A stretch of DNA of 64,000 bases from Oopsacas minuta (GCA_024704765.1 JAKMXF010000354.1:667690-731689), one strand, 5' to 3'. Shown: positions 17,751-55,478, counted from the stretch's first letter. Translations and numbers: made by a program. Notes: generated by a model not told the origin, from the letters alone.

Positions 17751-17798
17751 GTTCATTTATGGTGTGTTATCACTCAATTATTATTATTAGTTTGACAG

Positions 17799-18698: not shown

Positions 18699-19189
18699 CT
18701 TATGATTATAATTTTGATATTTTCCGATTAATAAATAATTCATCGATTAGGTTTTAAAATTTGATTTATTTTTATTTTTGTCATTATACTTTCTTCTAAA
18801 CGAGAGTTTCAACTGGGCCCAGAGTTAGCTCTCCAGTTAGATCATCTGAATTCAAGATTTCATTATTTTACGGAATGTTCCTATTTTGGGTAGCATCATT
18901 CTTTATGCGTTCACGTAGGTGGTAGAGATGTACACAGTGCGGTGTATTGTATGCATGTCTATCTGCTGTGCATTATATTATGTAACTAATTGGTATTAAC
19001 TGGAATGATTAAGTCATGCACTAATGACACACACTTGGATTCTTCACTTTACGTGATTGTTTATATTCCAAAGTTTTCATTATTCTACTTTCCTGATAAC
19101 TTACAATTTGGTGATCTTTTTGATTATATCTACCAGGTATATAGAATTCTCAAGAATTTAGTATTGACAACTTTCTAACATTATTTGCA

Positions 19190-19660
19190 CGGGTGGATTA
19201 TGGCATAGGCCAAGTAGGCCATGGCCTAGGGCCTAGCTCATTTGGGGGGCCCCGCGCATAATTAGATTTCCTGCAAAATTATTTAAACGAGGCTTGATAT
19301 TTTTGGAGAGAGACTCAATTTCGTGTCAAGCAAGAATGTTATATTTATATTGGGCCAATATCGGATTTCTGTGGCAGACTTCACGTTAAGGAATCTAGGT
19401 GTGGTAGTAATGTATAATTTATGGGTGAGGCATTGAATCGGATTTGACGACAAACATCGACTTTCAAGATATCATTGATGACTTCGCAAAAATGAAATCA
19501 AGAAAAAGGTTAATTTGATGGGGTCACTTATTATGAACCAAGTCACTGGTCCAATAAAATCATTTCCCATTGGATTTGTATTAAAAGGAGTTCTTATAAT
19601 GTGAATCTCTTTATTTTGAAGATTTTTGGTCCCGCGGGGGGTCAGAATAAGCAACCCTGA
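19190..19660. mobile_element. Possible decayed DNA-transposon remnant
   Basis: GC-rich patches (ggcataggccaagtaggccatggcctagggcc; ggtcccgcgggggg) in otherwise AT-rich intergenic DNA; no clear TIR or TSD resolved. Confidence 0.2.
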
Positions 19661-19708
19661 CTGTATATCTAACTACCATATCTTTCTAATTATAGCTATA
19701 CTGAATCA

Positions 19709-38361: not shown

Positions 38362-41300
38362 TTACAGGGGGGGGTGATTAAATGTACTATTATACATAAC
38401 TTCTAATTCATATTTGCTCTTCACATCCCAAATCTTGAACAATAATTTTAATCTCCCTAAAACACCCGCTTCTTTCTTCCAAGTTGCTTTTATTTTTAAA
38501 ATTTTACCTCTCCAGAGTGGTATCTTTTCTAAAAGAAGTATCGCGGTTATTCCCACTATAAATGGTATAATTGGAAAGAAATGGAATAGTTTCGGTCCTT
38601 GAGCAACAGCTGTTAATGCAAGGAAGAGGAAACAGAAAGACTCGAAGTGGTTCGAAAGCCTGTTATTGGCTGGTTTAAACAATGAATTTATGACCATTGT
38701 TAATAAGCAAAGAATAGAGACTGTGATTTGTACACTATTCAAGTCTATGAAGTTTGTCATGAAGGATAGCATGAAAGAAATCACTAGCCTGAGGAATAAC
38801 TTGTAAATCTCCCACCACCTGAATTTATGCTTGAATTCTTGTGTAAAATTGTGATGGAATTGGAAATCTTTTTTTGAATTGAGGGTAATGAAGAGAAGAA
38901 ATAAGGGAATAGAAGATAATGCAAATAGATAGAATAGACTAATTCCGGTTGCCATAAGATGCAGACCCTGGTAGCAAATATGTTGTCCATCGTACAGCCA
39001 GTAATTCCTTTTTTTAATTTGCGGGCAGGTTAGAATCATGAATGCATGTATTGATAAGTCTGTGTAGCTAAGAAGTAGCATCGACCAGATTTGTGTAGGG
39101 ACATCACGAGTTGAAAGCCAACTTACTTTTGATAATAGAAATCTCTGTAATAGAATGAAGATACACAGAACAGCCAGAGGAACAGTCATATCGAATAATA
39201 CAACATACAAGATTTTGTTTCCCGGATAGAGACAAAATGGTAATATTTGTGTGATTAGCAGGTTGAGAGGCAGTATTGGGATTGATAGCATTATATTAAC
39301 AAAATTAGAGTTGAGTGAATTTGAGTTTACTAGGATTATGTAGAGGATGTTTGCATATATAACGATGCTTCGCCAATAGTCTGCGAATAAGTTGATTCTG
39401 AATAACATGATTATAACGCAGAACACGCTTATGAACAGGAAGAACAATACTATCATCAAACCAGGATTGCAATCTATACAGTTGGAGTAAGGATAAGATT
39501 TAATATTATTAAAGAAAGGTGATAGAAACATGGTTTTGTTTGTATCAGTACATTTTCCACATAACATCCCTGACAGACCCGTGCGACATTGTTCGTCAGG
39601 TGCAATTGGATTAAAATGACATTCTCCATTTGTGGCACCCAAGACACATTTACATCTAGGCCAGAGACAGCGGGCTCCGTATACTTCTTGGGCCAAACCT
39701 GTTATGTCATCTTCTTCACTAGCGATGTAATAACCTTGTTTGATGAATATATTGTTATTATAACATGAATACCCGTCTCCGTTACTACAGGTGCATTTAT
39801 CATGTTCTCTGGTGAATCCATATGGACAGTTACCGACAATGATTCCTATACATGTCTTTTTTTTGTAAAAATCCCCAAACGATTCGACACAAATGATTCC
39901 TAGGCCTTTCCACGAGCTTTTAATGATAATATTTGTTGAAATATTTGTCAGAAACGATCGATGCGGGTTTTCTCCTTGATAAATGATGTTTTGGGATGGC
40001 TCTTCTTTCTTCAATCCATTTGAATACACAATTCCACTGAGGATTGCTCGAGTTATCACGTTGTTTCCGAAAGAATCATTGCTTGAGATGTTTATTTGAA
40101 TTGCATTGCCTGGATAAATATAGTAGAATTTATTGATATCAGAATTATTTTTGTGGAATACCGTCACCATTTTTGATGTGACATCTGTGACCTTTGTAAG
40201 TGGATTGTAATTACCCGAACTTTTGCAGAAATGAGACAGCTTCATCATGTAATTATCGTTAGTCTTTGCTGCTTGACTAAACAGTGTCTGTTTACATTCG
40301 ATAAAACTTGTAATGTTCATTTCGATAAGGAAAGATTCTTCCCTAGTATCTTTGCTGCAGGTTTTATTGTCGAAATATAACTGTCCTTCAATGAATTTAC
40401 TATCAAAACATTGGCCCAGTAATTGTGTGTATATCATGTTTCCTGCGCAAACCTTGTTATCATCACTAGCCTTATTCTCGAGTATCTTAATTATTGCATG
40501 CTTTGAACCGCTAAGGAAACAATGAGCTTTGATGTTCTCTATGTTGGAGTCCCAATCGAGGAAAGTATTTTCATAGTACAGACTATAGACATAGATTCCT
40601 CCACCATAGATATTAGCATTATTTCCCATTATTTCCAATGTACTGTTTTCCTTCTTATCCATCCATATATCACTTTCGCTTGACATATAGACACCAGCCC
40701 CATCCACACCTACACTATTATTCCTTATTCGTAGAGTTCCTTCGACGCTCAATTCACTGTATATCAGTGCTATTCCTCCTCCATTTCCATTCTTACAATT
40801 ATTCCCAGTGACATTAACCGTACCATATATTATCAAACTAACTCTATGAGCAAGTATAGCTCCTCCTACATAACCATAGTTATTAATAAACTGACTATTC
40901 TTCAATATTATCCTAACCTCTTGTGGCAGTCTAGTTGATGTTAGCATCAATGCACCTCCTGATTCACCCTTGTTATGATTAAATGTACAATTTTCAATTC
41001 TACTCCAACCATCTGATTCCCTGTAGATATAAACCGCACCACCATTAGGCCCGTGATTATTCGTGAAGTTGCAATCGATTATAGTCAGATCTGTTTCTCC
41101 CCCTTTCAGAAATAATGCAACCGCTCCTCCAGCCGGCATTTCTTTATACAATTTTTCGACTCTTGATTTATTTAATTTCCCTTTTTTGAAATTTCCCTTA
41201 CTGATCTTTATCCTCGAATATTGATGCTCTTCACCAATACTAACACATATGGAACTTCCTTGGGCAGCATGATTGCTTGTAAAATTATTATCCTCTATTT

Positions 41301-41976
41301 CAATTAACGATGTATTTTTCAAATAGCAAACTGATACTGCACTACCGCAATTCACTGAGGAATTAACTCCTGGAACTTGATCATTGAAATAGTTCACTAC
41401 CCAATACTTTCCTTCAAATACGTTTCTTCTAACTTCTACTTTATAATTTTGATATTCTATATGATCCGAAAATACCAAAATACCTTTGGAAGATCCATTA
41501 TCCCTACTGACGAACTCACTATTCATTATACTGACATTCTGTGTATTCACACATAGCAAATTAATGCCACTCACGTTTTGGAACTTGCATTTAGAAACAT
41601 TTACAGCCTGACACAAGTGGAAGGTAATGAATCCTAGGTTGTTTTGTGGTTGATTTTGTATACTTAGATTTCTATTGCAGTTATTGAAATTAATACCTTC
41701 AATGGTGACCTTAGAAATGTTTGAAAATTTTAAGGATAATCCATCTTGTCCTGTAGAACTCTCATTGCATTTCACTGACTGCCAATTTCCTTTCAGAGTG
41801 AATTCTCTGATGTTTTCAATTACAAGTGAACCATCAAGATAGTAGTCATAATTCTTAAGAACAATGTTTGGCTTACCTTGCTGTAGATGTTGATGGATTA
41901 TTTTTGTCAGATTTAATTGTTCTCCTTGACCGAATATAAGATAATTCAGTAAGATGTATATTATTAATGATTTCAT
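38362..41976 (-). CDS. Pmp-like parallel beta-helix repeat ectodomain + Cys-rich stalk + multi-pass membrane region (1204 aa)
   Basis: Signal peptide; repeated FxxN...GGA[IVL] motifs (FTNNHGPNGGAVYI, FNHNKGESGGALML, FINNYGYVGGAILA); CPYGF..C.C and GLSGMLCGKC; about 7-9 hydrophobic segments at the C-terminus; intronless. Confidence 0.75.
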   Translation of the reverse strand: MKSLIIYILLNYLIFGQGEQLNLTKIIHQHLQQGKPNIVLKNYDYYLDGSLVIENIREFTLKGNWQSVKCNESSTGQDGLSLKFSNISKVTIEGINFNNCNRNLSIQNQPQNNLGFITFHLCQAVNVSKCKFQNVSGINLLCVNTQNVSIMNSEFVSRDNGSSKGILVFSDHIEYQNYKVEVRRNVFEGKYWVVNYFNDQVPGVNSSVNCGSAVSVCYLKNTSLIEIEDNNFTSNHAAQGSSICVSIGEEHQYSRIKISKGNFKKGKLNKSRVEKLYKEMPAGGAVALFLKGGETDLTIIDCNFTNNHGPNGGAVYIYRESDGWSRIENCTFNHNKGESGGALMLTSTRLPQEVRIILKNSQFINNYGYVGGAILAHRVSLIIYGTVNVTGNNCKNGNGGGIALIYSELSVEGTLRIRNNSVGVDGAGVYMSSESDIWMDKKENSTLEIMGNNANIYGGGIYVYSLYYENTFLDWDSNIENIKAHCFLSGSKHAIIKILENKASDDNKVCAGNMIYTQLLGQCFDSKFIEGQLYFDNKTCSKDTREESFLIEMNITSFIECKQTLFSQAAKTNDNYMMKLSHFCKSSGNYNPLTKVTDVTSKMVTVFHKNNSDINKFYYIYPGNAIQINISSNDSFGNNVITRAILSGIVYSNGLKKEEPSQNIIYQGENPHRSFLTNISTNIIIKSSWKGLGIICVESFGDFYKKKTCIGIIVGNCPYGFTREHDKCTCSNGDGYSCYNNNIFIKQGYYIASEEDDITGLAQEVYGARCLWPRCKCVLGATNGECHFNPIAPDEQCRTGLSGMLCGKCTDTNKTMFLSPFFNNIKSYPYSNCIDCNPGLMIVLFFLFISVFCVIIMLFRINLFADYWRSIVIYANILYIILVNSNSLNSNFVNIMLSIPILPLNLLITQILPFCLYPGNKILYVVLFDMTVPLAVLCIFILLQRFLLSKVSWLSTRDVPTQIWSMLLLSYTDLSIHAFMILTCPQIKKRNYWLYDGQHICYQGLHLMATGISLFYLFALSSIPLFLLFITLNSKKDFQFHHNFTQEFKHKFRWWEIYKLFLRLVISFMLSFMTNFIDLNSVQITVSILCLLTMVINSLFKPANNRLSNHFESFCFLFLALTAVAQGPKLFHFFPIIPFIVGITAILLLEKIPLWRGKILKIKATWKKEAGVLGRLKLLFKIWDVKSKYELEVMYNSTFNHPPL

Positions 41977-42825
41977 ATATTTCTTCCAATACTATTAATT
42001 AATTTTACTGAGACTATTTCCTTTTTATGCTTTTCCAATCATTAGATTTGCAACAAAAGGGAGCAATACATATATTATCTCCCTAATAAATACACGTCCA
42101 TGATTATGCAATATTGATTACACTTACAAAGATCCTTAGCTTACAATAATTGGAAAGATTGAGTCATAATACATGTGGGTATTGTAACAGAATGTATTTA
42201 CTTTTGTTATTATATTTCTTATTAATACGCAATGAATAAATTCCATCGAAAACAGTAATAGTAAATGCAATCAGTATTTCATATTACCAAACCATAAACC
42301 AATATACATAAATACATATAATGTTGAGCAACTAAATGATTTATATTTTCCCTGCGGATGCAGTTTCTCAGTATTTTATAGTAAACACTATTCTTAAATT
42401 CTGAGATTAATAATTTGAGCTATGGTAGTGATTCAGCTCAAGTTCAGTTCAATTCTGGAACTTCTTTAATCTGAATTATAATTATCCCTAACTTATAATG
42501 ATGAGTCAATAAATCCTATTTTTAGCAAATTGCTATGATAATACTTAGTATTTCATTATCACGGTTTAAACCGTAATTCCTGCTTGTTATCAGTATTTCA
42601 AGAACTAAGCCTTATTTTCTGCCACTCTAATATTCAAGGCCATAACTGATATGAAATATGACTTCATATTGTGAGATGTATTATGAATCCATATTATATC
42701 TGACGTCTATAATTTGACTCAAATAAATAGAGACATTGCTCTGATAGAGCCCATCACACAACCAAATATCTCCAATAATTAAATTACGCAATTTCAAACA
42801 GATTTCCTTCACTCCTGTATCAAAG

Positions 42826-45800
42826 ATGGACGATGAGCTCAGTGATAAAAGTTTATTTTTTACTGTAAGCTCTACTGCACCGAAATTTTCCAAAGTAGCC
42901 AGTGTAGATGATGACGAGTCAGATCAGCCTGCATCATATGATCTCCACCAGGTGGATGACAATACTAATCCTCCATGTTATCAAAACATAGAACCTGAAA
43001 AACAGGCTAAAACTCCCTCACAAATATCCAAAGGTGCGTTTGAAACCAAAAGCTTGAATCCCTCTCAGTTGTTGAGGGCTCGCTCCAACCCGTTGACCAA
43101 AAAATTGGCTAAGGAAAATAAGACATTTGATATTGCAGACGCTCAAGAGTTTTCATGTTCGCCATTCGCTAAAAAGCGAATGTTTATCCAACGACAGGAA
43201 TCAATTTCTGATAGCAAACTTGATCAGGAATTTGCTCGTGAGCTCCGTATAACAGAAGATGAAGTTATAGCCGCATTCAGTCATCAAGAAGCTATACGAC
43301 GTGCTGATTCAGAAGTTAGTAACTGTCAGAAGATTTTACTACAGAGACAGATAGGTAGAACTGCTTCTCCACAAAATTTAGTCAGACCAACTAGGCTTCA
43401 TACAAGAATGCAGTCAGCTGATAGCAAGAACACCACACCCATTTTCACTAGTGCTAACCTACCACCTGATTCTACGGAATTTTCTCATCTATTCACAGTC
43501 CCTGATATTTATCCAAACGAGAACCTCCCTCTATTGGACACTACTTCAGACCCTTTAATCGACATAACATTCAAAGGACAGATACACTTCCCAACCAGAC
43601 ATGGACACAAGGATGCTTCTTATATCACACTACCTTCTGGAAGGGTCCCGGATAACATCATGGATACCCTGATTGATAAATGGGATCTCCCCCTTCCTAC
43701 CATAATCCTCTCCTTCCCAGGAAATGCTCAACTCAGCAACAACTCAAGATTCAGGCAAGTCCTGAAAGATAATATTATACGTATAGCAGCTACCACGAAG
43801 GTATGGTTCCTGACTGATGGAGTTAACAGGAGTATATCTGCTTTCCTGGGAAGTTGTCTAGAGAGCCACGCCTACAAACGGTGTGCTAAGAGAGAACAAA
43901 ATCAACGGGGCTGGTTAATCGGAAGTAATTACACTGAGTATGACAACCCTGTGCCCATGATAGGCCTAGTGTGTCCTGAAAAGGTATATAAAGGCAATAT
44001 TCTATTAGAAACAAATGCTGTAAGTACAAGTATTACGTATAGCAGAGAGTCTCAGAGTGTTCTCCCTGATAAAGATCTTCTCGACGTGAATCACTCTCAC
44101 TTCATTTTGTTAAGGAATTCTAAGTCTAAGAGCTCTGTAGCAGAACAATGGTCTGTTATTGAGGATAATATATCAAATTATCTGAAGCAAGGGAGTGAAG
44201 CATTGCCAGTAGTACGTATATTTATTGACGATACTCTACAAATTATTGATAAAGTCTGTCAGGCTGTAAAGAAAAACGTCGTGACGGTAGTAATCAGTAA
44301 CAACGATTTGATGCAAACTATACATGACTTCATATTCAGGCTAGCTGCACGGGACCAAAAGATTGGAGCCAAAGAGCATGGGAAATTCCTAGACTCTTGT
44401 AGGCACTACTTGGGGAATGAGTCAAATTCTAGAATTAACGAAGTGATTGCTAAGATATCTGTAATTCTAGAAAATTTCTATCTTGTAACAATGTTTGATA
44501 TGAACCTTACGTATGGAGCAGATTTAAGTAAGGCTATCGTAGTCGCACTTTTGAAATCTAAGAAGAGCACTGGTAAAGATAAAATGAAAGAAGCACTCGG
44601 ACTAGTTATTGACTGGAATAGAGTCGATTTAGCTGAACAAGATATATTCACAGAGAGCTTGATTTGGGGAGATACTGATCTCTTTCAGCATTTCTTTAAA
44701 ATATTACATATCAATCAAGTCGAGTTTCTTGATTTAATGCTTGAGAGGAATGTCATTGATGTAGAGACGTTTGTAGAACATCATCTAGAGAGGTTATACT
44801 TCGATGCAGTTGCTCTAAACAATAATAGTCCTCTATTTACTAAACTGCTAGAACTCTCACAAATAAAAGCACATACAAAACAACACACAACTACCAGAAC
44901 GATACTTAAGAAGAAGAAGAGTAGTCAACATAAAGAGAATATCCGATTGACTCAATTACAAGGTGATAAGGAAAAAATACCTATTAACCAAATTGGGAAA
45001 CTAATAAGATACATTATAAACCGTTCTTTCAAAAGTATTTACGAGGAATATTCTCAGAGTGAAATAGAGCGGAAAGTTATAAAAGATTACCCAATTGATA
45101 ATCTGTTTGTATGGGCTATTCTTACACATCGCTGGAAGATGGCAGAAATACTCCTAAGCTATAGTAAGTCTGTAGTTTTCAATGCTATCGCTGCTAAAGC
45201 ATTGATCTCAGGCATGTATAATCGGTTGAAAGATGTTCAGGTTGTTTCAGAGAGTGATTTAGAAATCCTACAGGGTGTAGCTAAGAAATTTGAATTGACT
45301 GCAGTAGGTATCATGGAAGAAGCGTATAAGAGAGATTACAAGCGTTCACATCTTATGCTACAACAGAAAAACAAACTTTTTGACGATAATAACTGTATTG
45401 AGATGGCAGTTAGTGGACACTGTATGACTTTTCTATCACATCCATGTGTCCAAACGTTGCTAGATTTACAATGGAAGAAACCGCTATATAGACACAACCC
45501 AGTGTGGAAAAAACTACTCGCAATTTTCTTTCCATTCCTGATATTTATACTTATCGAATTCAATGAACCTCATCCAAATTCCATTATAGGCTATCTCAGA
45601 TTCTACGATTCTCCTTCTATAAAATTCATCACACATGTCCTCTCATTTCTCTTGTATCTGCTCTTGTATTGTTATGTAGTCCTGTTCCAATGGTATCCCT
45701 TTCCTAATCTCGATCCCAGTGAGTGGATATTTATACTCTGGTCAATCACTATAGTGGCAGAAGAAGCTCGTCAGTTGTTCGGAGGCAGTGGTAGACTGGA

Positions 45801-46797
45801 GAAGAGATGGTTAGGATATTTCAGAGATCGCTGGAATCAATTTGACACTGTTTTCGTAGTATGTTTCATACTGGGCACAGTTCTACGTCTCATCCCGCAG
45901 GTTCCTCTACTATACAGCAAACATATGTACGCGCTTTTTGGGTTTATTCTATTCTTTCGTATTCTCCAATTCCTTATCATCCTCAGAGACTCAGGACCGT
46001 TTGTATACATGGTATTCCGTATGCTTAAGAACCTGACTCACTTCGTTATCATAGCACTGGTCTTTCTGTTAGCTTACGGTGTTCCCTCTCAAGCTATTCT
46101 ATATCCAGATATTCCACGTAATTCTAATAATTCATACGCTTTTGTTATCGGTAATATATTCTTCAGGCCTTACTTCCAAGCTTTTGGAGAGTTCTTCTTA
46201 CAACATTCGAATTCTAACACTGGGGGTAGTTTCAGAGATAGTAATCCTGAATTATATTTATCTTCAAAAGTATTCGTGTTTATATTTCTTCTCGTATGGA
46301 TAATTCTGTCTAATATCCTTCTCGTTAACATCATTATTGCAAAATTCAATAACACATTTGTTGAGATAGAATCTAATGCTGCACTCTACTGGAAATATAA
46401 GTTCTTTAATTCTGTGAGTGAGTTTCGTGGTAAGCCAGTATTGCCTCCACCCTTTAACGTTATAGTCATTGGATACAGGTGTATCAGAAGAATTATTCTA
46501 TGGTTCAATCGGTGTGCTATAAATAGGAGTGAGGGAGAATGTGATTTTGAGTGTCAAGAGAGGAAGCTGTTATTTGAATATGAAAAGAGATGTGTTCTGG
46601 CGTTTAAGTTCAATATAGAATTGACTCAAGAAAGAAACATAGAAGATAGAATATCTAACTTAGATGATCGCTTGATGAATACACAACAGATGATCCTATC
46701 AGTCAAAGGTAAAATTGATAACTTACAGTTCAATGGTGATATATTGTTGGACTCGGAAAGAGATCTACCCACTTTACACAGAGATAGTAACAACTAA
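42826..46797 (+). CDS. TRPM-family cation channel
   Basis: MHR/SLOG region (WDLPLPTIILSFPG, WFLTDG, LDVNHSHFIL), WNRVDLAEQDIF, LFVWAIL, FLSHPCVQTLLDLQW, six TM segments, pore FQAFGE, LLVNIIIAKFNNTF + TRP-box WKYKFF, C-terminal coiled coil; intronless. Confidence 0.93.
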   Translation: MDDELSDKSLFFTVSSTAPKFSKVASVDDDESDQPASYDLHQVDDNTNPPCYQNIEPEKQAKTPSQISKGAFETKSLNPSQLLRARSNPLTKKLAKENKTFDIADAQEFSCSPFAKKRMFIQRQESISDSKLDQEFARELRITEDEVIAAFSHQEAIRRADSEVSNCQKILLQRQIGRTASPQNLVRPTRLHTRMQSADSKNTTPIFTSANLPPDSTEFSHLFTVPDIYPNENLPLLDTTSDPLIDITFKGQIHFPTRHGHKDASYITLPSGRVPDNIMDTLIDKWDLPLPTIILSFPGNAQLSNNSRFRQVLKDNIIRIAATTKVWFLTDGVNRSISAFLGSCLESHAYKRCAKREQNQRGWLIGSNYTEYDNPVPMIGLVCPEKVYKGNILLETNAVSTSITYSRESQSVLPDKDLLDVNHSHFILLRNSKSKSSVAEQWSVIEDNISNYLKQGSEALPVVRIFIDDTLQIIDKVCQAVKKNVVTVVISNNDLMQTIHDFIFRLAARDQKIGAKEHGKFLDSCRHYLGNESNSRINEVIAKISVILENFYLVTMFDMNLTYGADLSKAIVVALLKSKKSTGKDKMKEALGLVIDWNRVDLAEQDIFTESLIWGDTDLFQHFFKILHINQVEFLDLMLERNVIDVETFVEHHLERLYFDAVALNNNSPLFTKLLELSQIKAHTKQHTTTRTILKKKKSSQHKENIRLTQLQGDKEKIPINQIGKLIRYIINRSFKSIYEEYSQSEIERKVIKDYPIDNLFVWAILTHRWKMAEILLSYSKSVVFNAIAAKALISGMYNRLKDVQVVSESDLEILQGVAKKFELTAVGIMEEAYKRDYKRSHLMLQQKNKLFDDNNCIEMAVSGHCMTFLSHPCVQTLLDLQWKKPLYRHNPVWKKLLAIFFPFLIFILIEFNEPHPNSIIGYLRFYDSPSIKFITHVLSFLLYLLLYCYVVLFQWYPFPNLDPSEWIFILWSITIVAEEARQLFGGSGRLEKRWLGYFRDRWNQFDTVFVVCFILGTVLRLIPQVPLLYSKHMYALFGFILFFRILQFLIILRDSGPFVYMVFRMLKNLTHFVIIALVFLLAYGVPSQAILYPDIPRNSNNSYAFVIGNIFFRPYFQAFGEFFLQHSNSNTGGSFRDSNPELYLSSKVFVFIFLLVWIILSNILLVNIIIAKFNNTFVEIESNAALYWKYKFFNSVSEFRGKPVLPPPFNVIVIGYRCIRRIILWFNRCAINRSEGECDFECQERKLLFEYEKRCVLAFKFNIELTQERNIEDRISNLDDRLMNTQQMILSVKGKIDNLQFNGDILLDSERDLPTLHRDSNN

Positions 46798-47028
46798 TTG
46801 GTAGATATATTAATCTTCCCACTTCTACCCTGTTTTAACTTTGTAAAATTGTATAATACTTTCCCCAGCATGTCCTATTGAGATAATTCTGTGGTATCCT
46901 TTTGATTTGATAATTTTCTTTTTTGTATATTAAACATTTTCTCAGCATACAAGTATATATCTGGTTTTGAGATCTACAATTCTATATTTTTAGCTTAGTT
47001 CGAATCAACTACAATTCAACATTTTGAG

Positions 47029-48939
47029 ATGGACATTAGTGAAGAGAAATCTTTAAACAAAGACATGTCACCTCTCGTTTACGATACATTAACGTGTGTA
47101 CATTGTAAGAAATTCAAGAGAACTTCTAAATTTCTAAAATGCAATCATGTTATATGTCCTAAATGTCTCAGTGTCCTTAGTGCTAACGGATGTATAGAGT
47201 GTACTATATGCGGCTTATTGACTCCAATTCCTAATGGGGAAGTTGACCTGGAAGATAACTTCATGGCACTGCACTGTATCAACAAGAAAGATGTATTAGC
47301 TAGCATTGGTAGTGTGCTATGTAACTCTTGTTGCCTAGGTAAGAGTACTCCATCTGAGCTGTTCTGTGTACAGTGTAATCGTTACATGTGTAAGATAGAT
47401 TGGAATGCTCATAAGAACTTTGTGCCAGGAGCATCTTATCATGTGTCTATTAATAAGGATATTACATCTGATTCAGACACCGAGCAATTCCTGATACAAA
47501 CCAGTGTTTCTCAGCACTGTAGAGATCATCCTAATTATAACACAGAGCTGTATTGTACTAACTGTAGGATTCTAACGTGTGCAAACTGTTTGGTTGTAAA
47601 TCATAAAGATCATATTGTGGTAGGAATGAATGTAGCTCTTGAGAGTGAGCTAGCTGACTTCTCTAAGTGTAAAGAGAGTCTTGAAGAAAAGATTGATACT
47701 TGTAAACAGATACTACAGCAGTCTGAACAGAAGAAAGGATCTCTGGAGGAGAAGAGAGATTTTGAGAAAGGACGAATTGACAAGGAGTATGAAGAAAAGT
47801 TAGCACTTATTGTCAAAACAAGAGACGATGAGTTACTACAGCTGAGGACTGAATATGATGACGTCATTAACACATTATTTATCCAGACACAACAGCTGGA
47901 GTCTTCTCTAAACCAGCTTTATCAAGCTATCCGTCTAACGCAGACATGCAGCGCTCTTGCTCAATGTAAAGAAGATCAGCTGACTCTTATACCTAAGATT
48001 ACAGACAGACTCGTCTCGTTATCAGAAACTATACCCAAGCAAAAGCCTATTCAGTCTGAACTACATTTGGGCACATCTCCTAGCTTGCATTCCCCAAATG
48101 TAGTAAAACTCAAATATTCATTGGAAACAATTGAGCCTACTCACAAGATTGGAGATAATATTAATCTTAACAAGACAAGAGCTATAGTCAGCGGAGATAA
48201 TGATGAAATATTCGTGGTTGATAAAGGAAACTCTCTAATACATTCTTTCTCTCCAGAAGGGAAACAGTTAAGGGCATTTGGGAGCTATGGCCGTGGTCCA
48301 GGACAGTTTAAGAGCCCTTGGGGACTCTGTCTAGACGGGAAGAGACTATTCGTATCTGACACTAGTATAGGTATTGTCATGTCTTTCACGATAGAAGGGA
48401 CATATCGAAGTAAATTCGGGGCTTGGGGACAAGCTGCCGGAGAATTTCGATCTCCTAAGGGTATTTGTACTGATTCTATTGGCTGTCTCTGGGTAGCAGA
48501 TTGTGATAACAATCGTATACAGAGATTTGATCAGGAAGGAAAACATTTGGATATTTTCCCTCATAACAAAAGTTTTGTTATGACAAAGCCAGTTGACGTC
48601 AAAACTGCCTTATATGATAATACACTATGGGTATTGACTGGATGTAGTCCTGCTGTCCTACATATTAGCAGTGAAGGAGAAGTACTTGATCAGATTGCTA
48701 CTTTAGGGAAAGGAAGAGAATTGAGTCACCCAGTGTCTATATGTTACGATAACGCTTCCCGTTGTGTATTGGTAACAGATACATCTAGCTCCTGTGTAAT
48801 GGTATTCAGTGAGACAGGTGTTGTAGAGGGGAGACTAACCTTTCAAGATGTTAAATCTTATGCTCTGCACGGGGTTACTGTAGATAGGGCAGGACGTGTA
48901 CTCTGTACTGCCAAATGTATACAAGTATTTGTGATATAA
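47029..48939 (+). CDS. TRIM-NHL E3 ligase (RING, two B-boxes, coiled coil, NHL repeats)
   Basis: RING CVHC...CNHVICPKC...CTIC; B-boxes CNSC...LFCVQC and CRDH...LYCTNCRILTCANC..NHKDH; NHL GPGQFKSPWG, AGEFRSPKG, VADCDNNRIQRF. Confidence 0.9.
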   Translation: MDISEEKSLNKDMSPLVYDTLTCVHCKKFKRTSKFLKCNHVICPKCLSVLSANGCIECTICGLLTPIPNGEVDLEDNFMALHCINKKDVLASIGSVLCNSCCLGKSTPSELFCVQCNRYMCKIDWNAHKNFVPGASYHVSINKDITSDSDTEQFLIQTSVSQHCRDHPNYNTELYCTNCRILTCANCLVVNHKDHIVVGMNVALESELADFSKCKESLEEKIDTCKQILQQSEQKKGSLEEKRDFEKGRIDKEYEEKLALIVKTRDDELLQLRTEYDDVINTLFIQTQQLESSLNQLYQAIRLTQTCSALAQCKEDQLTLIPKITDRLVSLSETIPKQKPIQSELHLGTSPSLHSPNVVKLKYSLETIEPTHKIGDNINLNKTRAIVSGDNDEIFVVDKGNSLIHSFSPEGKQLRAFGSYGRGPGQFKSPWGLCLDGKRLFVSDTSIGIVMSFTIEGTYRSKFGAWGQAAGEFRSPKGICTDSIGCLWVADCDNNRIQRFDQEGKHLDIFPHNKSFVMTKPVDVKTALYDNTLWVLTGCSPAVLHISSEGEVLDQIATLGKGRELSHPVSICYDNASRCVLVTDTSSSCVMVFSETGVVEGRLTFQDVKSYALHGVTVDRAGRVLCTAKCIQVFVI

Positions 48940-49084
48940 CTGATTTAGCTATGAAATTAATTGAGTCAATTATGTAATCTATTCTATGATATTCTATAAA
49001 TATTATTGTAGGATATGCCACTGTTGAATACTTTTTTGTGATATATTCTATCTCACACAATTATTAGCTACTGCAGTAAGACAG

Positions 49085-49480
49085 ATGGATGATGATGATC
49101 TTAACTATGGGGATATGGGAGGTCTAGGAGATGGAGGGGACTCTGATGATGACATTGATGATATTGATGACGCTGAGGTAGATCTAGGAGATGATAACAT
49201 TGATATGTTACAATCTTCATCAGGACCTAGCGACCCCTCTAAGCGTATCACAACACCTTTCATGACTAAGTACGAGCGAGCGCGCGTTCTAGGAACACGA
49301 GCTCTGCAAATCAGTATGGGAGCTCCTGTGATGGTGGATCTAGACGGAGAGACTGATCCACTGAAAATTGCTACAATGGAATTGAATGAGAAGAAAATAC
49401 CCATGTTAATACGAAGATATTTGCCTGATGGTAGTCACGAAGATTGGAAGATAGATGAATTGATGAATCCTTCTAGTTGA
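49085..49480 (+). CDS. POLR2F: RNA polymerase I/II/III shared subunit RPABC2 (RPB6)
   Basis: [31 protein letters not shown]...[13 protein letters not shown]; acidic N-terminus. Confidence 0.97.
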
Positions 49481-49654
49481 TGATAGTATCTATGGTATTA
49501 ATTATTCATATGAGTTGATATAATTTGATTACATTTGATTACATCCAAACCTGAAGTTGATTACAATTGTAATCGTGACTGAATACTTTTATAATCCAAA
49601 TAGATATTATGTTAATAACTTGCATGTCTAGATAATCATTAGCTATAAATAAAG

Positions 49655-50203
49655 ATGCTTGTACTTATAATTGGAGATCTGCACATACCATACCGTGAAG
49701 CTGGTATTGCAATGAAATTCAAATCTCTCCTAATGCCGGGTAAGATACAGCACGTGTTATGTACAGGTAATCTATGTAGCAGAGAGACATTCGATTATCT
49801 CAAATCACTAGCTACAGATGTTCATGTAGTGAAGGGAGATTTTGATGATAACATTAGTTACCCAGAACAGAAGGTGGTCAGTGTAGGGAACTTCCGTATC
49901 GGTCTCCTGCATGGACATCAATTGGTCCCATGGGGAGATCATGAGAGCTTAAGCTTGGTACAGAGACAGCTTGATGTTGATATCCTGGTGTCTGGACACA
50001 CCCACAAACTGGAAGCGTTTGAGAATGAAGGAAAGTTCTACTTGAACCCAGGGTCTGCTACAGGAGCATACTCTCCGTTAGATAGTGCAGTTATTCCATC
50101 TTTCGTAGTGATGGATATACAGCAGAATCTAGCTACGGCTTACACCTATAGGTTAGTCAATGATGACGTTAAGGTTGAGAAGGTAGAGTACAGACGTGCT
50201 TGA
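49655..50203 (+). CDS. VPS29: Retromer subunit VPS29
   Basis: [49 protein letters not shown]. Confidence 0.97.
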
Positions 50204-50355
50204 ATGGTAGTTACTCTTTCTGTGTGTTCTATCATTAGATAACTAAAGTATTATTGTATTACTATGGAGTTCTGTATATAATGAGAATGATATGCCTTAT
50301 TTCATTACAAAAAACTTCTATGATAATATTGTACTTTTAACATTAGTTAGTTGAT

Positions 50356-51114
50356 ATGGCAGAATCTTCGCCTCTCTCAGAATTCCTATCTGACAAACTC
50401 ATCACTACGTCTGGATACTCTCTCTTCGGTAGGATAATGTCCTGGTCAAGAGATAGCTACCCCTCAGAACTCTCTCAGGCGAGAATAACCACTTTCCTGT
50501 TTGGAGAAGATGCGATTAGACAGGTACAGGATCGTGTGTTATCTGACCCATTCGGTGTCCTCATAGAGCTAGGCCTGATGCCTGATTATGTCAAATGGAA
50601 AATAGAAGTTACACAGGAGGATTACTGGTTGGTACTCTTCCGTGTTATGCCGTCATACCATTCTCCTATACGTGCTTTCCCAGCTACTTGGAATGGAATA
50701 GGAGATATAATAGCTTACAAGTTTCCGGGTGCTCTATACGATTTTAATCAGCACAAAGATGTGCTATCTTCTAATTCTTGTCAATTCTTTGAGAAAGAAA
50801 GTGGGATTGATTTTATGAAATGTTTGAAGTTGAAACAGGAGGATAACGATATCTCTCCTTACTTCAGTTATGCTAGATTTATGAGATGTCCAGTCCCTAG
50901 AAGTTCCTGGCAAGTTAGACTGTTCCTATACTGTGAACTTAGAGTTCTAGAGTACTTCACTGGAGACGGATACACACACACTGCTGATAAGAAACGCGGT
51001 TATAAGGAGTATATAGCTAACAGTATTAATCTATCACTTATACCAGCCGATCAGCTGTTTGTTATTAAGCTACATATTACTCCTGAGCACTTGTCATTCT
51101 ATTGTGACAGCTGA
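50356..51114 (+). CDS. Uncharacterised 252-aa protein
   Basis: Intact ATG-to-stop ORF filling the gap between VPS29 and ZUP1, with globular-protein composition; no family recognised with confidence. Confidence 0.65.
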   Translation: MAESSPLSEFLSDKLITTSGYSLFGRIMSWSRDSYPSELSQARITTFLFGEDAIRQVQDRVLSDPFGVLIELGLMPDYVKWKIEVTQEDYWLVLFRVMPSYHSPIRAFPATWNGIGDIIAYKFPGALYDFNQHKDVLSSNSCQFFEKESGIDFMKCLKLKQEDNDISPYFSYARFMRCPVPRSSWQVRLFLYCELRVLEYFTGDGYTHTADKKRGYKEYIANSINLSLIPADQLFVIKLHITPEHLSFYCDS

Positions 51115-51178
51115 CAGCTCATGAGTTGTGTTTATTTATACTTTTGGATTTCTCATGGTTTATTTGTATACGTATAGC

Positions 51179-52558
51179 ATGGCATCTTTATTTGGGGATG
51201 AGGATGACGTAATAATATCTCTACAGGAGGGATATGAAGGTTGGGTGATATGTCAGTATCCAGACTGTAATCAACAAGTTCTTATTGTACAGCTAGAAGA
51301 ACACCTGTTATCTCATTCAGCTACCTCATCAGATGAGATATCTGATCTAGAGTTCGCAAGAGCTCTCCAGGAATCAGAAGATCAACTAATTTCTGCAATC
51401 GAAGCAGACTATCAATTAGCTCTATCATTACAGAACCAAGAAACTACATACACACAAGCAAAACCTAACACCCAGTTAGCTACTGCGGATATAGCCCCTC
51501 GTACTTATAGCTCAGCTGCTAAACCAACTAATTATCAAACAAGAGGTAACTCTAATTACTCATACAAACCGTCACCTTACGCTAACATTAAACCTGGTAG
51601 TAACATACATTCACTGAGTTCTGTGACGTCATCAGTTAAGGGTAAAGGCAGGGGAGAGGGTGGATATACTGCTCAGACCCTGAACAAATTGGAGCAGCAG
51701 GCGAATAAGGGGGCCATTACATCTGTTGATCTGCATTTTAAGAAATTAGAGTTTATGGAGAATCTTAATTCTGGTAAAGATGACCTGAACTCTTGCACTG
51801 AGGGAGTACTACAGAGTATGATGCATTCATATGGGCTGTTCTCACCTTCATGGAGTTACTACCTCTCTCTAGACACGCCTCACTTCTCGTACTCTCTAGG
51901 AGACAGGGGTTGGGGGTGTGGATATCGTAACATACAGATGATAATAGGTAGCTTGCTGATGAGTGATAAATATAGAGTAGTCATGAATCGTACATTTAAT
52001 GGAAATGTCCCAACAGTACCCCGCCTCCAGGAGCTACTGGATGAAGCCTGGCGTGCAGGTTACGACCCTCAGGGGGCCAAGAGCCTAGGGTACAAAGTAC
52101 GTGACACAAAGACTTGGATTGGAGCCACAGAAGCTGCAGTTCTATTCAGATCATTTGGAGTTAAAGCAGAAGTAGTAGATTTCATAAAACCTCCAGGATC
52201 TGGTAATACACATGCTAGACTCATACAGTGGGTAGAGGACTACTTCAAGAGGTCTACCTGTATAACTACAGACCTTCCTCCTGTATATCTACAGCATTCA
52301 GGTCATAGTCGTACAATTATTGGATGGAGTCAATATAGGAGTAACAAGTATTTAACAATATTAGACCCCATGACTTATCCAGATAAACTCAGGAAATGTG
52401 TGCAGTTAAAAGAAAGAGAATTGGTGTGGTTACTCTCTCGGATATCGTCACATTTCTACAAGTCTGAATACCAAATTGTATCTATAACCGGATTAATAGA
52501 ATCTCATAAAAAAGAGTCATATAAAATAATATCTCCAATACAGAGATTAACTCATTAG
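51179..52558 (+). CDS. ZUP1: Zinc finger-containing ubiquitin peptidase 1 (C78-fold deubiquitinase)
   Basis: Catalytic GDRGWGCGYRNIQM, WIGATEAA, YLQHSGHSRTIIG, ILDP; N-terminal zinc finger (CQYPDC...HLLSH) and MIU-like helices (DLEFARALQ, DYQLALSLQ). ATG at 51179. Confidence 0.9.
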   Translation: MASLFGDEDDVIISLQEGYEGWVICQYPDCNQQVLIVQLEEHLLSHSATSSDEISDLEFARALQESEDQLISAIEADYQLALSLQNQETTYTQAKPNTQLATADIAPRTYSSAAKPTNYQTRGNSNYSYKPSPYANIKPGSNIHSLSSVTSSVKGKGRGEGGYTAQTLNKLEQQANKGAITSVDLHFKKLEFMENLNSGKDDLNSCTEGVLQSMMHSYGLFSPSWSYYLSLDTPHFSYSLGDRGWGCGYRNIQMIIGSLLMSDKYRVVMNRTFNGNVPTVPRLQELLDEAWRAGYDPQGAKSLGYKVRDTKTWIGATEAAVLFRSFGVKAEVVDFIKPPGSGNTHARLIQWVEDYFKRSTCITTDLPPVYLQHSGHSRTIIGWSQYRSNKYLTILDPMTYPDKLRKCVQLKERELVWLLSRISSHFYKSEYQIVSITGLIESHKKESYKIISPIQRLTH

Positions 52559-52641
52559 AAATTCTTATTTGTGATAATTACACCTGTAGAGGTGAATAAT
52601 TGGACGCTTTATTAGCCCCGATTTACAAATTCTACAACAGC

Positions 52642-52660
52642 AGATGTGTATAAGAGACAG
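52642..52660 (+). other. Exact Tn5 mosaic end / Nextera adapter sequence, probable assembly contaminant
   Basis: agatgtgtataagagacag, 19/19 identity to the ME sequence. Confidence 0.9.
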
Positions 52661-53099
52661 CTTTATTTATGGGAATGAACCTGAATTAGCATCAAATAGT
52701 ACTCAAGGTAATCCTCGTTGTCCTGAATAACACTCACTGATTATAATTATTATCGTATTTAATTTGTTGTAATTATCAATTAATACATGTTTATTAGTTC
52801 ACTCGAGAATTACCTGATAACTAATACAAATCTTTTGAAAGCATATGATAGAGTTTTAACACTTTATTGTGTAATTAATTGACTACCTAACTATGCTAAT
52901 GTAATTGTTATATTATCCTATTGTTACTATTACATATTCTGTAATTGTATTCTGTAATTGTAGTCATGCGTTTTGTTGTTGTAATCTGATTACTGATTAG
53001 GCTTAGGATTTTGATAAATACACGAAAGATTGGTGATAATTTATTGTATTCTTCCTTGAAATTGCTAGATATTTTATTAGAGAATAACACCTCCCAGTT

Positions 53100-54965
53100 A
53101 TGACAGCTCCAATACTTTCATACTATTATGATTTGATGTTACCAAAAGCATCTGGCACAGTAATGAAGGCTAAATGCAAATATTGTGGTACTATAATTTC
53201 TGGAAGACTAAACACATCTTCTAACTTCATCACTCACACGAAGGTATGTAAATTTTCTTTAGATAGTTTTCAGTTATTTATTTTATTACTTTTTTTATAG
53301 AGGAAACACAGAGAGATATATCAAACTCTATTTATGGCACAAAAAGTTCGTCCTGCAGAATCTAGACCCACCATTAAAGTGTCTACTCAGGTTCTTGATT
53401 CACAACCTGTATATGTACAACAAACTGATACTTTACTTAAACTCATAGCTGCTGACCTATTACCTATCTCTATTGTAGATAGTATACAATTCCATCAATT
53501 TGTGACTACCTTAAATCCTCACTACAAACTACCTACTAGAGACCAAATTAACACTAAACTATTACCAGAACTCGCCGCATCTATACAAACACTCATAAGG
53601 CTTAATCTTACAAAAGCTCATAGTGTGTGTCTTAGCTTTAGCGTAGCTAGCCAAGAAGCTAAAACCTTGATAGGAATTACAGCACATTATATAATAGACT
53701 GGAGATTATACTCAATGGTTCTATCTTATACAAGACTAGAGTGTATGTGTAATGAGAGTATTCTCAGACAGGAGTATGAACAGGTAGTAGCTGGTTATGA
53801 AATAGCTCATAAAGTGATTAGCGTTGTTGTATATAGTTCTCTCAATTCACTAGCTCCTTATCTAACGTCTATACCAGGATTCTCAACAGAAGAAAATGAT
53901 AATTATATTATTTTAAGAGTGGAACCACTCGTAAAAGATTCTAAACCGTTACCAGTTATATCGTTTAATTTCCTACCAAGAAGCAGTCCTTGTTTTGTAC
54001 ACAGCCTCCATCTGATTGTGAGAGATACTCTAAACGAGTTAAGTGAGCCTCTGAGGAATGCTATACACGATATTTCTAGCACTATCCAGTACTTAGAGTC
54101 TTTAGGACACAAAATAGTTAAAAACGAAGATAAACCAAATTCTACCAAATGGATTTCACAGCTAGACACGATACGTACTCTATTGTACTTGTCTGAAGAA
54201 GAATTTAGTAAATTAGAGATATCTCACTTCTCTAAAGCTGAGAGAGAAATGCTCCTTGAATTATGTGATATTCTTCATCCTATTGAGCATGCCTTGAGGT
54301 TACTCCAACAGCATGCGAATGTTTCCCCTGGATTTATCATACCGGTTTCTCGAGGAATCAAACACAAACTTGAGCAGATTACACCTGTGCATAACGATAA
54401 TGTGCTTGTTACTGTAAAGAAATTAGTCCAAGAGAGATTAACTCGTTACGAGCAAGACGATTCTTACATCACAGCATCAGTATTAGACCCCAGATTCAAG
54501 TTGAGATGGAGTAATCAGGATGAACAATGTAAAATTAAATCCATTTTCCTAAACAAAGTTTCTATCTTACTATCTTGTTACGCAACTAATCATGATGATA
54601 CCAACTCACAATTGACAAAATCTCAAAAAACTGAAGATGACCTTTTCAGCTTTATGACTCCCACTAGTAGTAATAATGGTACACAGCTAACTACCTTAGA
54701 AGCAGAAACAGAGGTTATTCAGTTTTTATCACAGCCTTGCTTAGACATGGAAGCTGATCCCTTTATGTACTGGAAGACACAGCAAGCCAATTTCCCACTC
54801 TTGGCTGAGATGGCTTTTAGCTACATGGCTATGCCTACTTCTTCACCAGATGAAATTGTCCTAAACGATCTCCTCAAATCTGATCTTTCTTCCCTCAGTT
54901 ATGAAACTTTTCAGATGTTAATGATTGTTAAATTTAATCCTAACTTACAAATAAGAGCTCTTTAA
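53100..54965 (+). CDS. BED zinc-finger hAT-transposase-derived protein (ZBED-like), probably domesticated
   Basis: Exon 53100-53243 joined to 53301-54965 completes the BED finger (CKYC...FITHTKRKH). Also DLLPISIVD..QF, GITAHYIIDW, CFVHSLHL, ASVLDPRFK, and the hATC dimerisation motif DPFMYWK...FPLLAEMA. Confidence 0.85.
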
Positions 54966-55256
54966 CGAATAAATGAAATGACTTGTGGTATAACTTTATA
55001 TTGTTGTTCTTGGATAATTATTTTATCTGTACACGGCCCTTTATCTTATACGTAATTCACTGAATGAATTTTTATTATACTATTTCAGTCAGGGACGGGT
55101 CTTATTATGAACCCCCTATTAGTGCTTGATACAAAATCTATGGGAATGGTTTTATTTGGGCCACTGGTTTGGTTCATAATAAGCTCCCATGACTATATAA
55201 GGATTTAAAAGTGTTTCCCTTCATTTACAAATACTCTTAGTTTCGTCTTCTCTCCA

Positions 55257-55478
55257 ATGCCAATTCTCCCTGGACAAGCTGCTACCTCTAGCACACAGAT
55301 GGACGAGGAAAGTGCTGCAGATTTTAACCAAATGATGGAATATGAAGAATCTGGGATTAGTGCTTCATCTGAGCTAACTCAAACTGATAAAATAATTCAT
55401 TTGGATTTTTATAATCGTTTTGGAGATCTCTGTGATGATGACTTAGATTTAGGAGTAACTACAACCAAAGCTAAGTAA
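55257..55478 (+). CDS. COPS9: COP9 signalosome subunit 9 (CSNAP/MYEOV2)-like small acidic protein
   Basis: C-terminal DKIIHLDFYNRFGDLCDDD resembles the COPS9 motif (KAVHADFFNDFEDLFDDD). Confidence 0.65.
   Translation: MPILPGQAATSSTQMDEESAADFNQMMEYEESGISASSELTQTDKIIHLDFYNRFGDLCDDDLDLGVTTTKAK

Follow-up and report, generated by a model that had tools for sequence, protein, structure and literature searches.

Spliced-leader trans-splicing and a candidate dicistronic unit in an eight-gene block of the glass sponge Oopsacas minuta

Eight genes lie in a row on one strand of the Oopsacas minuta genome, and RNA contigs support spliced-leader (SL) trans-splicing there, at AG acceptors lying a short way upstream of start codons. 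The best explanation, which we hold with moderate confidence, is that the block comprises several transcription units giving SL-trans-spliced mRNAs, among them a dicistronic unit formed by an orphan gene and ZUP1. SL trans-splicing in glass sponges is already published (PMC7986045, with earlier EST work as cited there; PMC10282587, on Aphrocallistes vastus), and the initial annotation of this DNA had rightly pointed to such a report. An SL-resolved dicistronic unit has not been reported in sponges, and the orphan-ZUP1 pair may be new.

The region analyzed was a 64-kb window of contig JAKMXF010000354.1 (GCA_024704765.1); all positions are those of the whole window. Eight plus-strand genes (TRPM, TRIM-NHL, POLR2F, VPS29, orphan, ZUP1, ZBED, and COPS9; Table 1) follow one another with stop-to-start gaps of 231, 145, 174, 152, 64, 541, and 291 nt (computed with the ZUP1 and ZBED start codons at 51179 and 53100), a range of 64 to 541 nt; the published mean for this genome is 2 kb. 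The gene identities proposed in the initial annotation were borne out by Pfam and all seven of its gaps were exact; SLC25, Sec1/STXBP, and TBCB, placed elsewhere in the window, were likewise confirmed. Eight consecutive genes on one strand, out of about 25, are in themselves nothing remarkable. Gene order and orientation are identical in five other glass-sponge assemblies.

The RNA evidence consists of contigs assembled from a single unstranded run (X4; k=31 graph), whose sample also gave DNA runs X2 and X3. X4 shows RNA character in its uneven depth, its Illumina adaptor ends, and a joint across the ZBED intron. Such contigs give neither single-molecule span, transcript ends, nor local depth, and the depth of a contig averages its full length; the depth figures cover the stretch holding POLR2F, VPS29, the orphan gene, ZUP1, and ZBED.

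Table 1. Genes, splice acceptors, and sequence elements of the eight-gene block (window positions)
Feature	Position	Strand	Remarks
TRPM	42826-46797	+	Single exon; Pfam LSDAT_euk, TRPM2, Ion_trans
AG before TRPM	42824-42825	+	Adjoins ATG, as AAG
TRIM-NHL	47029-48939	+	Pfam B-box, NHL
AG before TRIM-NHL	47027-47028	+	Adjoins ATG, as GAG
TATAAAT box	48995-49001	+	90 nt before POLR2F ATG
POLR2F (Rpb6)	49085-49480	+	Pfam RNA_pol_Rpb6
AG before POLR2F	49083-49084	+	Adjoins ATG, as CAG
POLR2F-VPS29 gap	49481-49654	+	174 nt
VPS29	49655-50203	+	Pfam Metallophos_2
AG before VPS29	49653-49654	+	Adjoins ATG, as AAG; better TAG acceptor 12 nt upstream
14-nt block TGTATATAATGAGA	50273-50286	+	In VPS29-orphan gap
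Orphan trans-splice acceptor (cattAG/)	50345-50346	+	RNA-verified; exon starts at 50347, 9 nt before ATG
Orphan gene	50356-51114	+	252 aa; no Pfam match
Orphan-ZUP1 spacer	51115-51178	+	64 nt
ZUP1 trans-splice acceptor (tatAG/cATG)	51176-51177	+	Predicted
ZUP1 deubiquitinase	51179-52558	+	Pfam Peptidase_C78; vertebrate ZUP1 matches
ZBED candidate acceptor (cccAG/ttATG)	53096-53097	+	Weakly indicated by the end of an 11x contig and a rise in depth
ZBED/hAT-derived gene	53100-54965	+	602 aa; Pfam Dimer_Tnp_hAT
ZBED exon 1	53100-53243	+	
ZBED intron	53244-53300	+	
ZBED exon 2	53301-54965	+	
TAG nearest COPS9	55239-55240	+	Acceptor-like; 16 nt upstream of ATG
COPS9	55257-55478	+	Pfam MYEOV2

Trans-splicing, as the initial annotation had proposed, was seen directly at the orphan gene. 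One X4 contig (882 nt; depth, 316) opens with 21 non-genomic letters (AAATCTTCATAAAAAACTTAC) and then matches positions 50345 to 51205 without a gap. Because these letters are foreign to the window and the genomic match begins at 50345, the leader is joined at the TAG acceptor, with the leader-exon junction at 50345/46. The leader letters are internal to the contig, and the acceptor has no colinear branch. The 21 letters, read at this one gene in the window, found no counterpart in the window even with 3 mismatches allowed, nor any in 14 fetched loci or in JGI metagenomes; no SL RNA gene was found in the window (which had no Rfam match), the 14 loci, or the JGI metagenomes. Evidence for trans-splicing is indirect at ZUP1 (51176/77) and at ZBED (53096/97), and we infer it for TRPM, TRIM-NHL, POLR2F, VPS29, and COPS9.

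The presence of AG just before start codons, also proposed at the outset, stood up to a count against the background of the window. In gene order, the nearest AG lies 0, 0, 0, 0, 5, 1, 2, and 16 nt before the eight start codons; six of the eight thus have one within 2 nt, against 22.6% of all 2,306 ATGs in the window (binomial p=0.0025). The enrichment was weaker at 29 crude long-ORF starts across the window (within 2 nt at 12, p=0.019; abutting at 8, p=0.004). Across six glass-sponge genomes, which are not phylogenetically independent, 18 of 42 starts of the block genes had an AG within 2 nt (against 24%; p=0.006), and a pyrimidine preceded the AG in 31 of 42 cases. At the orphan gene, the sole RNA-verified case, the acceptor used is not the AG closest to the ATG. 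We propose that the SL would be added at an AG acceptor 0 to 11 nt before the start codon, with removal of a short outron and almost no genomic 5' UTR left; SL addition at such acceptors would explain the pattern.

A Kozak-like or compositional bias alone, with no trans-splicing at the block genes, would also place AG before ATG. AAG and GAG are poor splice acceptors, and the abutting AGs of TRPM, VPS29, and TRIM-NHL take those forms; the nearest AG in the relatives often lies 4 to 15 nt from the start, and across the window as a whole, AG within 2 nt is enriched only modestly (p=0.02). Against such a bias, which we regard as most improbable, stand the non-genomic leader joined at the orphan TAG, an RNA-only branch lying exactly on the ZUP1 TAG (described below), and the prior publication of SL trans-splicing for the glass-sponge class. 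The leader was seen on one contig only, as it might be if it were an ordinary cis-spliced 5' exon from beyond the window or an assembly chimera. We give this even less credence: in a k=31 graph, junction k-mers must derive from real reads, the join falls on a canonical acceptor, and, as the window lacks the leader even with 3 mismatches allowed, a cis exon would have to be joined across many genes by an intron longer than 50 kb, against an O. minuta mean intron of 341 bp (PMC10280926).

The leader-bearing contig also continues unbroken past the stop codon of the orphan gene (51114), over the whole 64-nt spacer and the start codon of ZUP1, ending at 51205. It overlaps by 30 nt (k-1) with the following RNA contig (1,772 nt; depth, 345), whose match begins at 51176, on the A of the ZUP1 acceptor as predicted. 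DNA contigs from the same sample pass 51176 unbroken, so the branch is confined to RNA. Adding up the two listed contigs leaves 8.0 and 9.2 of the bin depths unaccounted for; both remainders fit a single extra contig of about 115x on positions 51176 to 51205 alone, and two other bins come out exactly when calculated in this way. The position of the branch and the depth calculation lead us to infer that its partner is the leader carried by the orphan gene. At the ZUP1 acceptor, where the colinear path is the main one, about one-third of the ZUP1 5' ends seem to be attached to other sequence. Since the orphan acceptor lacks a colinear branch, the read-through is specific to the orphan-ZUP1 spacer. 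The ZUP1 acceptor lies 1 to 2 nt before the start codon in five of six species.

A single RNA contig that holds the leader, the orphan ORF, the gap, and the beginning of ZUP1 supports, at contig level, the original suggestion that a 64-nt gap implies co-transcription. The contigs fit an SL-resolved dicistronic unit, which orphan and ZUP1 may form. A single leader-capped RNA would run through the orphan ORF and the spacer into ZUP1, single molecules presumably spanning both genes; a minority (about one-third by depth) would be cut at the ZUP1 acceptor and receive its own leader, yielding a translatable ZUP1 mRNA. POLR2F and VPS29 may form a similar unit.

The chief competitor to this dicistronic reading makes each gene its own unit with a compact promoter, separately trans-spliced, with no functional dicistron. 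RNA over the spacer would then come from a long orphan 3' UTR overlapping a ZUP1 outron begun inside the orphan ORF, or from unprocessed nuclear RNA. Overlapping UTRs are common in compact genomes, contigs cannot demonstrate single molecules, and the block does contain independent units, as its depth steps and TATA-like boxes show; operons, moreover, are unreported in hexactinellids (PMC7986045). We nevertheless consider this competitor rather unlikely, if well worth keeping in view. The spacer, only 64 nt long, holds no TATAWAW in five of six species, which is compatible with one promoter for the pair, and no AATAAA or ATTAAA in any of the six. The colinear path is the main one at the ZUP1 acceptor, yet X4 retains no such path at the orphan acceptor. 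Orphan and ZUP1 are adjacent, 63 to 126 nt apart, in all six genomes, and their depths (316 and 345) are within 10% of each other, whereas other neighbors differ up to 50-fold; this near equality could be coincidence, contig depth being a whole-length mean.

RNA depth changes in steps along the block. It is about 12,000 over POLR2F (about 11,000 to 13,000) and about 17,000 over VPS29 (about 14,000 to 22,000), and it drops about 50-fold at the VPS29-orphan boundary, across which there is no colinear RNA path. The POLR2F-VPS29 gap is covered by RNA at about 1,200x, to at least 49589. Just one 11x RNA contig, ending at 53096, was found in the ZUP1-ZBED gap; depth just past that point is about 900 to 1,500x, and ZBED coverage as a whole about 900 to 3,700x. 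Steps of about 50-fold coincide with boundaries bearing conserved TATA-like boxes. Before POLR2F, TATAWAW is present at -53 to -91 in five of six glass-sponge genomes, and in the VPS29-orphan gap the 14-nt block TGTATATAATGAGA is exact or near-exact in five of six species, between flanks that cannot be aligned. Judged by sequence, these boxes, which sit in AT-rich DNA, suggest separate promoters for POLR2F and the orphan gene. RNA covers the 14-nt block, to at least 50292; it could be the TATA box of the orphan unit or, since it lies inside the VPS29 3' UTR, may instead be a 3' UTR element or 3'-end signal. In none of the six species does the POLR2F-VPS29 gap hold a well-placed TATAWAW; its sole copy (O. 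minuta) lies 11 nt from the ATG, too close for a promoter. TATATAT stands 75 nt upstream of the TRIM-NHL ATG, and TATATAA at -63 before COPS9. The favored model accordingly has putative TATA-type promoters within the gaps that precede POLR2F and the orphan gene and, in O. minuta, probably before TRIM-NHL and COPS9 too.

The initial annotation had described the block as operon-like, and in the strongest form of that idea a promoter upstream of TRPM would drive all eight genes as a single operon, whose transcript SL addition would resolve into eight mRNAs. The genes are co-oriented, the gaps short, most starts preceded by acceptor-like AGs, and the order kept in six genomes; conserved order, however, is not specific evidence, because microsynteny is reported to be general among glass sponges (PMC10282587). 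The RNA and the promoter-like sequences oppose a single operon, which we judge very improbable: depth falls about 50-fold from VPS29 to the orphan gene and rises again at ZBED, with only 11x before the ZBED acceptor; the orphan contig bears a leader with no colinear branch to VPS29; TATA-like boxes conserved in five of six species each lie inside the block, before POLR2F and the orphan gene; and the 541- and 291-nt gaps are roomy enough for promoters. As mRNA stabilities differ, the depth steps do not strictly exclude co-transcription.

Several known systems resemble parts of this arrangement. Oikopleura dioica has a very compact genome with many intronless genes and short spacers, and it adds an SL to both monocistronic and operonic genes. 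Its operons are numerous, and their defining spacers do not exceed 60 nt, whereas only one of the seven spacers here (64 nt) is about so short. Nematode SL2-type operons, as in Caenorhabditis elegans, likewise have co-oriented genes, spacers of about 100 to 200 nt, and an acceptor for each downstream gene; unlike them, the present block gave no evidence of a second, operon-specific leader, and its depth steps and conserved TATA-like boxes favor several promoters. The putative orphan-ZUP1 unit, as read from contigs, would resemble Ciona dicistronic and C. elegans SL1-type operons (PMC7986045), in which two same-strand genes have a very short or absent spacer and the downstream gene receives the monocistronic-type leader, with no specialized SL2. 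Here, by contrast, the two-gene colinear RNA appears to be major and itself leader-bearing, not a rare precursor. Within the same class, hexactinellid SLs share a short A/T-rich leader, not encoded beside the gene, at an AG near the start; neither paper on them (PMC7986045, PMC10282587) reports polycistronic units, and the O. minuta genome paper makes no mention of splicing or operons. In A. vastus the leader motif is about 37 nt long and was on only 4% of long reads (PMC10282587).

The POLR2F-VPS29 gap holds three copies of TTGATTACA. The ZBED intron (57 nt, with GT..AG ends) was seen as a joint in RNA, the reading frame is open after splicing, and exon 1 is kept in five relatives. The orphan protein belongs to a family that is widespread and unnamed; an ADP-ribosyltransferase/NADase-like fold is weakly indicated.

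Pfam matches supported seven of the eight gene names that the initial annotation had assigned to the plus-strand array (TRPM, TRIM-NHL, POLR2F, VPS29, the "orphan," ZUP1, ZBED, and COPS9), the fifth open reading frame (the orphan) having no Pfam match; the ZUP1 protein also matched vertebrate zinc finger-containing ubiquitin peptidase 1. The seven stop-to-start gaps were confirmed at 231, 145, 174, 152, 64, 541, and 291 nt (ZUP1 ATG, 51179; ZBED ATG, 53100). The annotation had also reported an AG just before many start codons, and this held: from the nearest AG to the ATG, the distances were 0, 0, 0, 0, 5, 1, 2, and 16 nt (genes in order), i.e., 2 nt or less in 6/8 genes versus 22.6% of all 2,306 ATG triplets in the window (P = 0.0025). 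Among 29 crude long-ORF starts from the whole window, the excess was smaller (AG within 2 nt in 12/29, P = 0.019; abutting AG in 8/29 versus 9%, P = 0.004), and the abutting AGs included poor acceptors, four of them AAG or GAG. The pattern is real, not overwhelming. Because spliced leader (SL) trans-splicing of glass sponges is already published, it matters chiefly for annotation, and Oopsacas minuta gene models should begin at the acceptor.

Four sequencing runs were compared with positions 48990 to 54989, and the RNA results apply to that 6-kb stretch. X2 and X3 were DNA (even depth, ~95×), X4 was RNA from the same sample (depth, 11 to 22,400×; Illumina adaptor ends; a joint across the ZBED intron), and X5 was DNA of a relative (95 to 97% identity). 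All were used as Logan contigs, in which joins and presence are visible and transcript ends are not; 5′ ends of POLR2F and VPS29 estimated from bin depths carried an error of ±30 nt or more and were left out of the evidence. X5, from another study and under another organism label, carried the locus with a 9-nt in-frame insertion in ZUP1 (window position 51215) and +1/−1 indels in the orphan-ZUP1 spacer; X5 represents either a divergent O. minuta population or a close relative.

An 882-nt X4 contig (depth, 316×) began with 21 letters, AAATCTTCATAAAAAACTTAC, that matched nothing in the stretch, and then matched positions 50345 to 51205 without gaps. The genome reads cattAG at 50341 to 50346, followed by ttagttgatATG, and the base preceding 50345 was C in the RNA and T in the genome; the leader must therefore finish with ...ACAG, which puts the acceptor AG at 50345 and 50346 and the first exon base at 50347. 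The contig thus shows the leader-exon junction directly, at a canonical TAG acceptor; two TAGs are present, and the splice uses the first of them rather than the AG closest to the ATG. No SL RNA gene was found, in that the leader had no match with up to 3 mismatches in the 64-kb window and none in the 14 fetched loci or, followed by GT, in JGI metagenomes; neither an Rfam family nor a tRNA was detected in the window, and a full-text literature search for the leader string returned no match. The proposal of SL trans-splicing at an AG before the ATG is thus directly supported at the orphan, although its SL part was already known.

The same contig continued past the orphan stop codon (51114), through the 64-nt spacer, and into 27 nt of ZUP1. 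The following X4 contig (1,772 nt; depth, 345×) overlapped it by 30 nt; its first base was the A of tatAG|cATG (51176). With k = 31, the graph breaks between contigs sharing k − 1 letters only if the shared 30-mer is preceded or followed by a further sequence. Same-sample DNA contigs (50221 to 52159 and 50922 to 52642) were unbroken across the ZUP1 acceptor, which makes the additional branch specific to RNA; the split lies exactly where a leader ending in AG would place it. A successor branch at 51206 would need a donor or a variant, and neither a GT nor a DNA variant occurred there. Bin depths near the junction (348.0 and 379.8) were 8.03 and 9.24 above the summed depth of these two contigs, and both surpluses corresponded to one further contig of 115× covering 51176 to 51205 only, an arithmetic that is sound because two other bins were reproduced to the decimal. 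Node flow fitted ~230× colinear plus ~115× joined elsewhere, giving 345×. From this position and depth arithmetic, we infer that about one-third of ZUP1 5′ ends carry a leader and about two-thirds are continuous with orphan RNA.

Continuity of this kind might be background, e.g., DNA contamination; at the orphan acceptor, however, the leader letters lay inside the contig and the assembly retained no colinear path leading in from VPS29, so read-through is peculiar to the orphan-ZUP1 spacer. We also considered the orphan and ZUP1 as a single gene and rejected it: the spacer was present in the RNA contig without a splice, the two ORFs were in different frames and did not overlap, X5 carried both a +1 and a −1 indel in the spacer, spacer length ranged from 63 to 126 nt across species, and a distant orphan homologue stood alone on a transcript-sized contig of 1,275 nt. 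The annotation had argued from the 64-nt gap to cotranscription; one X4 contig does cross the spacer, but these contigs do not carry transcript ends. An SL-resolved orphan-ZUP1 dicistron that is conserved is plausible, with the chances close to evenly balanced. In L012, a relative's locus, the ZUP1 start position (L012:6334) was GTG instead of ATG, directly after the conserved tatAG acceptor; translation may begin at a non-AUG codon or farther downstream, or the base may have been misread in sequencing.

A single operon of eight genes, as first proposed, was not borne out. X4 depth was ~11,000 to 13,000× over POLR2F, 14,000 to 22,000× over VPS29, 316× over the orphan, 345× over ZUP1, and 890 to 3,700× over ZBED, with steps at the VPS29/orphan and ZUP1/ZBED boundaries. 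The sole RNA contig lying between ZUP1 and ZBED had a depth of 11× and ended at 53096, inside the AG (53096 and 53097) before the ZBED start, and depth right after that acceptor was ~900 to 1,500×; this hints at processing at that AG, and ZBED RNA was not visibly continuous with ZUP1 RNA in the X4 contigs. The gaps at which depth changed were those with a conserved TATA-like box, and where a gap had no such box, the genes on either side were similar in depth. Most simply, the block reads as several transcription units, each of them trans-spliced, of which orphan-ZUP1 and perhaps POLR2F-VPS29 would comprise two genes.

The locus was also compared across five further glass-sponge assemblies; their orphan proteins showed 54 to 75% identity. 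Gene order and orientation were identical in all six loci; TRPM was present in the four relatives' loci that stretch to its position; at the other end, the loci with sufficient reach had COPS9, PIG-H, and the EGFR-like kinase. Conserved pieces stand out because intergenic DNA was mostly unalignable among species. TATAWAW occurred 53 to 91 nt upstream of the POLR2F ATG in 5/6 species, at no usable distance in the POLR2F-VPS29 gap (0/6), and was absent from the orphan-ZUP1 spacer in 5/6. Before the orphan, a 14-nt block, TGTATATAATGAGA, was shared by 5/6 species (the window, L002, L012, L013, and L014) within unalignable flanks; its overlapping 8-mers were common to four species, which shuffled gaps rarely reached. 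Because RNA extends to at least 50292, the block also falls within the VPS29 3′ untranslated region (UTR), and it may be a 3′ UTR element rather than a promoter. In a promoter it would be a TATA box; it also has a likeness to a Pumilio site, UGUAUAUA. Five species had recurrent GATTAC/GTAATC-type 8-mers in their ZUP1-ZBED gaps. TGTATAT-type motifs were discarded as a general promoter or 3′-end signal, having no consistent placement across the window, and canonical poly(A) signals were scarce in all gaps, even those bound to hold 3′ ends, and thus uninformative. In a search for transcript contigs, exact look-up of POLR2F matched the genome record alone (contig JAKMXF010000354.1 of GCA_024704765.1), and searches for homologues of the orphan, ZUP1, and VPS29 brought up glass-sponge proteins encoded in genomic or metagenomic assemblies and no RNA-derived contigs.

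SL trans-splicing in hexactinellids is established. A 2021 review counts hexactinellid sponges among the SL-using groups and says that neither operons nor polycistronic mRNAs were known from reports on them (PMC7986045), and a leader motif of ~37 nt is described for Aphrocallistes vastus, in only 4% of long reads (PMC10282587). The O. minuta genome paper makes no mention of splicing or operons and puts the intergenic distance at 2 kb on average (PMC10280926). What is new here is contig-level evidence for one dicistronic unit, and the central issue is whether sponges have operons at all. We consider it possible, at slightly less than an even chance, that glass sponges have genuine SL-resolved operons: a single dicistronic RNA with a leader cap would give rise to both the orphan and ZUP1, a further trans-splicing event would resolve part of it, and the arrangement would be retained across six or more hexactinellid genomes. 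Orphan-ZUP1 would then be Porifera's first described operon, with POLR2F-VPS29 as a second candidate. In its workings, the candidate unit comes closest to the dicistronic operons with short spacers in Ciona and the SL1-type operons of Caenorhabditis elegans; in contrast to both, the two-gene RNA here seems to be the major, leader-capped form. A conserved dicistron resolved by trans-splicing in early-branching animals would bear on whether operons and SL trans-splicing arise jointly each time a genome becomes compact.

Features of the window with their positions
Feature	Positions	Strand	Remarks
ORF, 1,204 aa, single exon	38362-41976	-	No Pfam domain; diverges from TRPM over an 849-nt gap
TTGATTACA, three copies within 41 nt	49525-49565		POLR2F-VPS29 gap
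14-nt block TGTATATAATGAGA	50273-50286		Before the orphan
Orphan ORF	50356-51114	+	Fifth gene of the array
19-nt Nextera transposase end AGATGTGTATAAGAGACAG	52642-52660		ZUP1 3′ region, inside the assembly
hAT/ZBED transposase-derived gene	53100-54965	+	BED-finger first exon
ZBED intron	53244-53300	+	57 nt, GT..AG; confirmed by an X4 RNA joint; spliced frame open

The orphan does not deserve its name: by profile search, its family was recovered as 489 cluster representatives, 233 of them at an E value of ≤1e−10, with no sequence match in Pfam, NCBIfam, or PDB. Its AlphaFold model, a confident one (pLDDT, 93.5), had no Foldseek match in PDB, VIA-align matches were weak (Z up to 4.5) and mostly to proteins of the ADP-ribosyltransferase/NADase fold, and certain long members of the family bear a nicotinamidase-like part. 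The family, which has no name, may consist of enzymes that use NAD.

At the Nextera transposase end, same-sample DNA and RNA contigs omit 15 nt, and DNA depth peaks at 6,000 to 9,000× with many chimeric joints; it is probably an adaptor remnant, because Nextera mate-pair libraries were used for the O. minuta genome (PMC10280926). The ZBED gene stands at the same position and in the same orientation in six glass-sponge genomes (the window, L002, L008, and L012 to L014) and is expressed at ~900 to 3,700×; it seems to be a domesticated transposase rather than a mobile copy.
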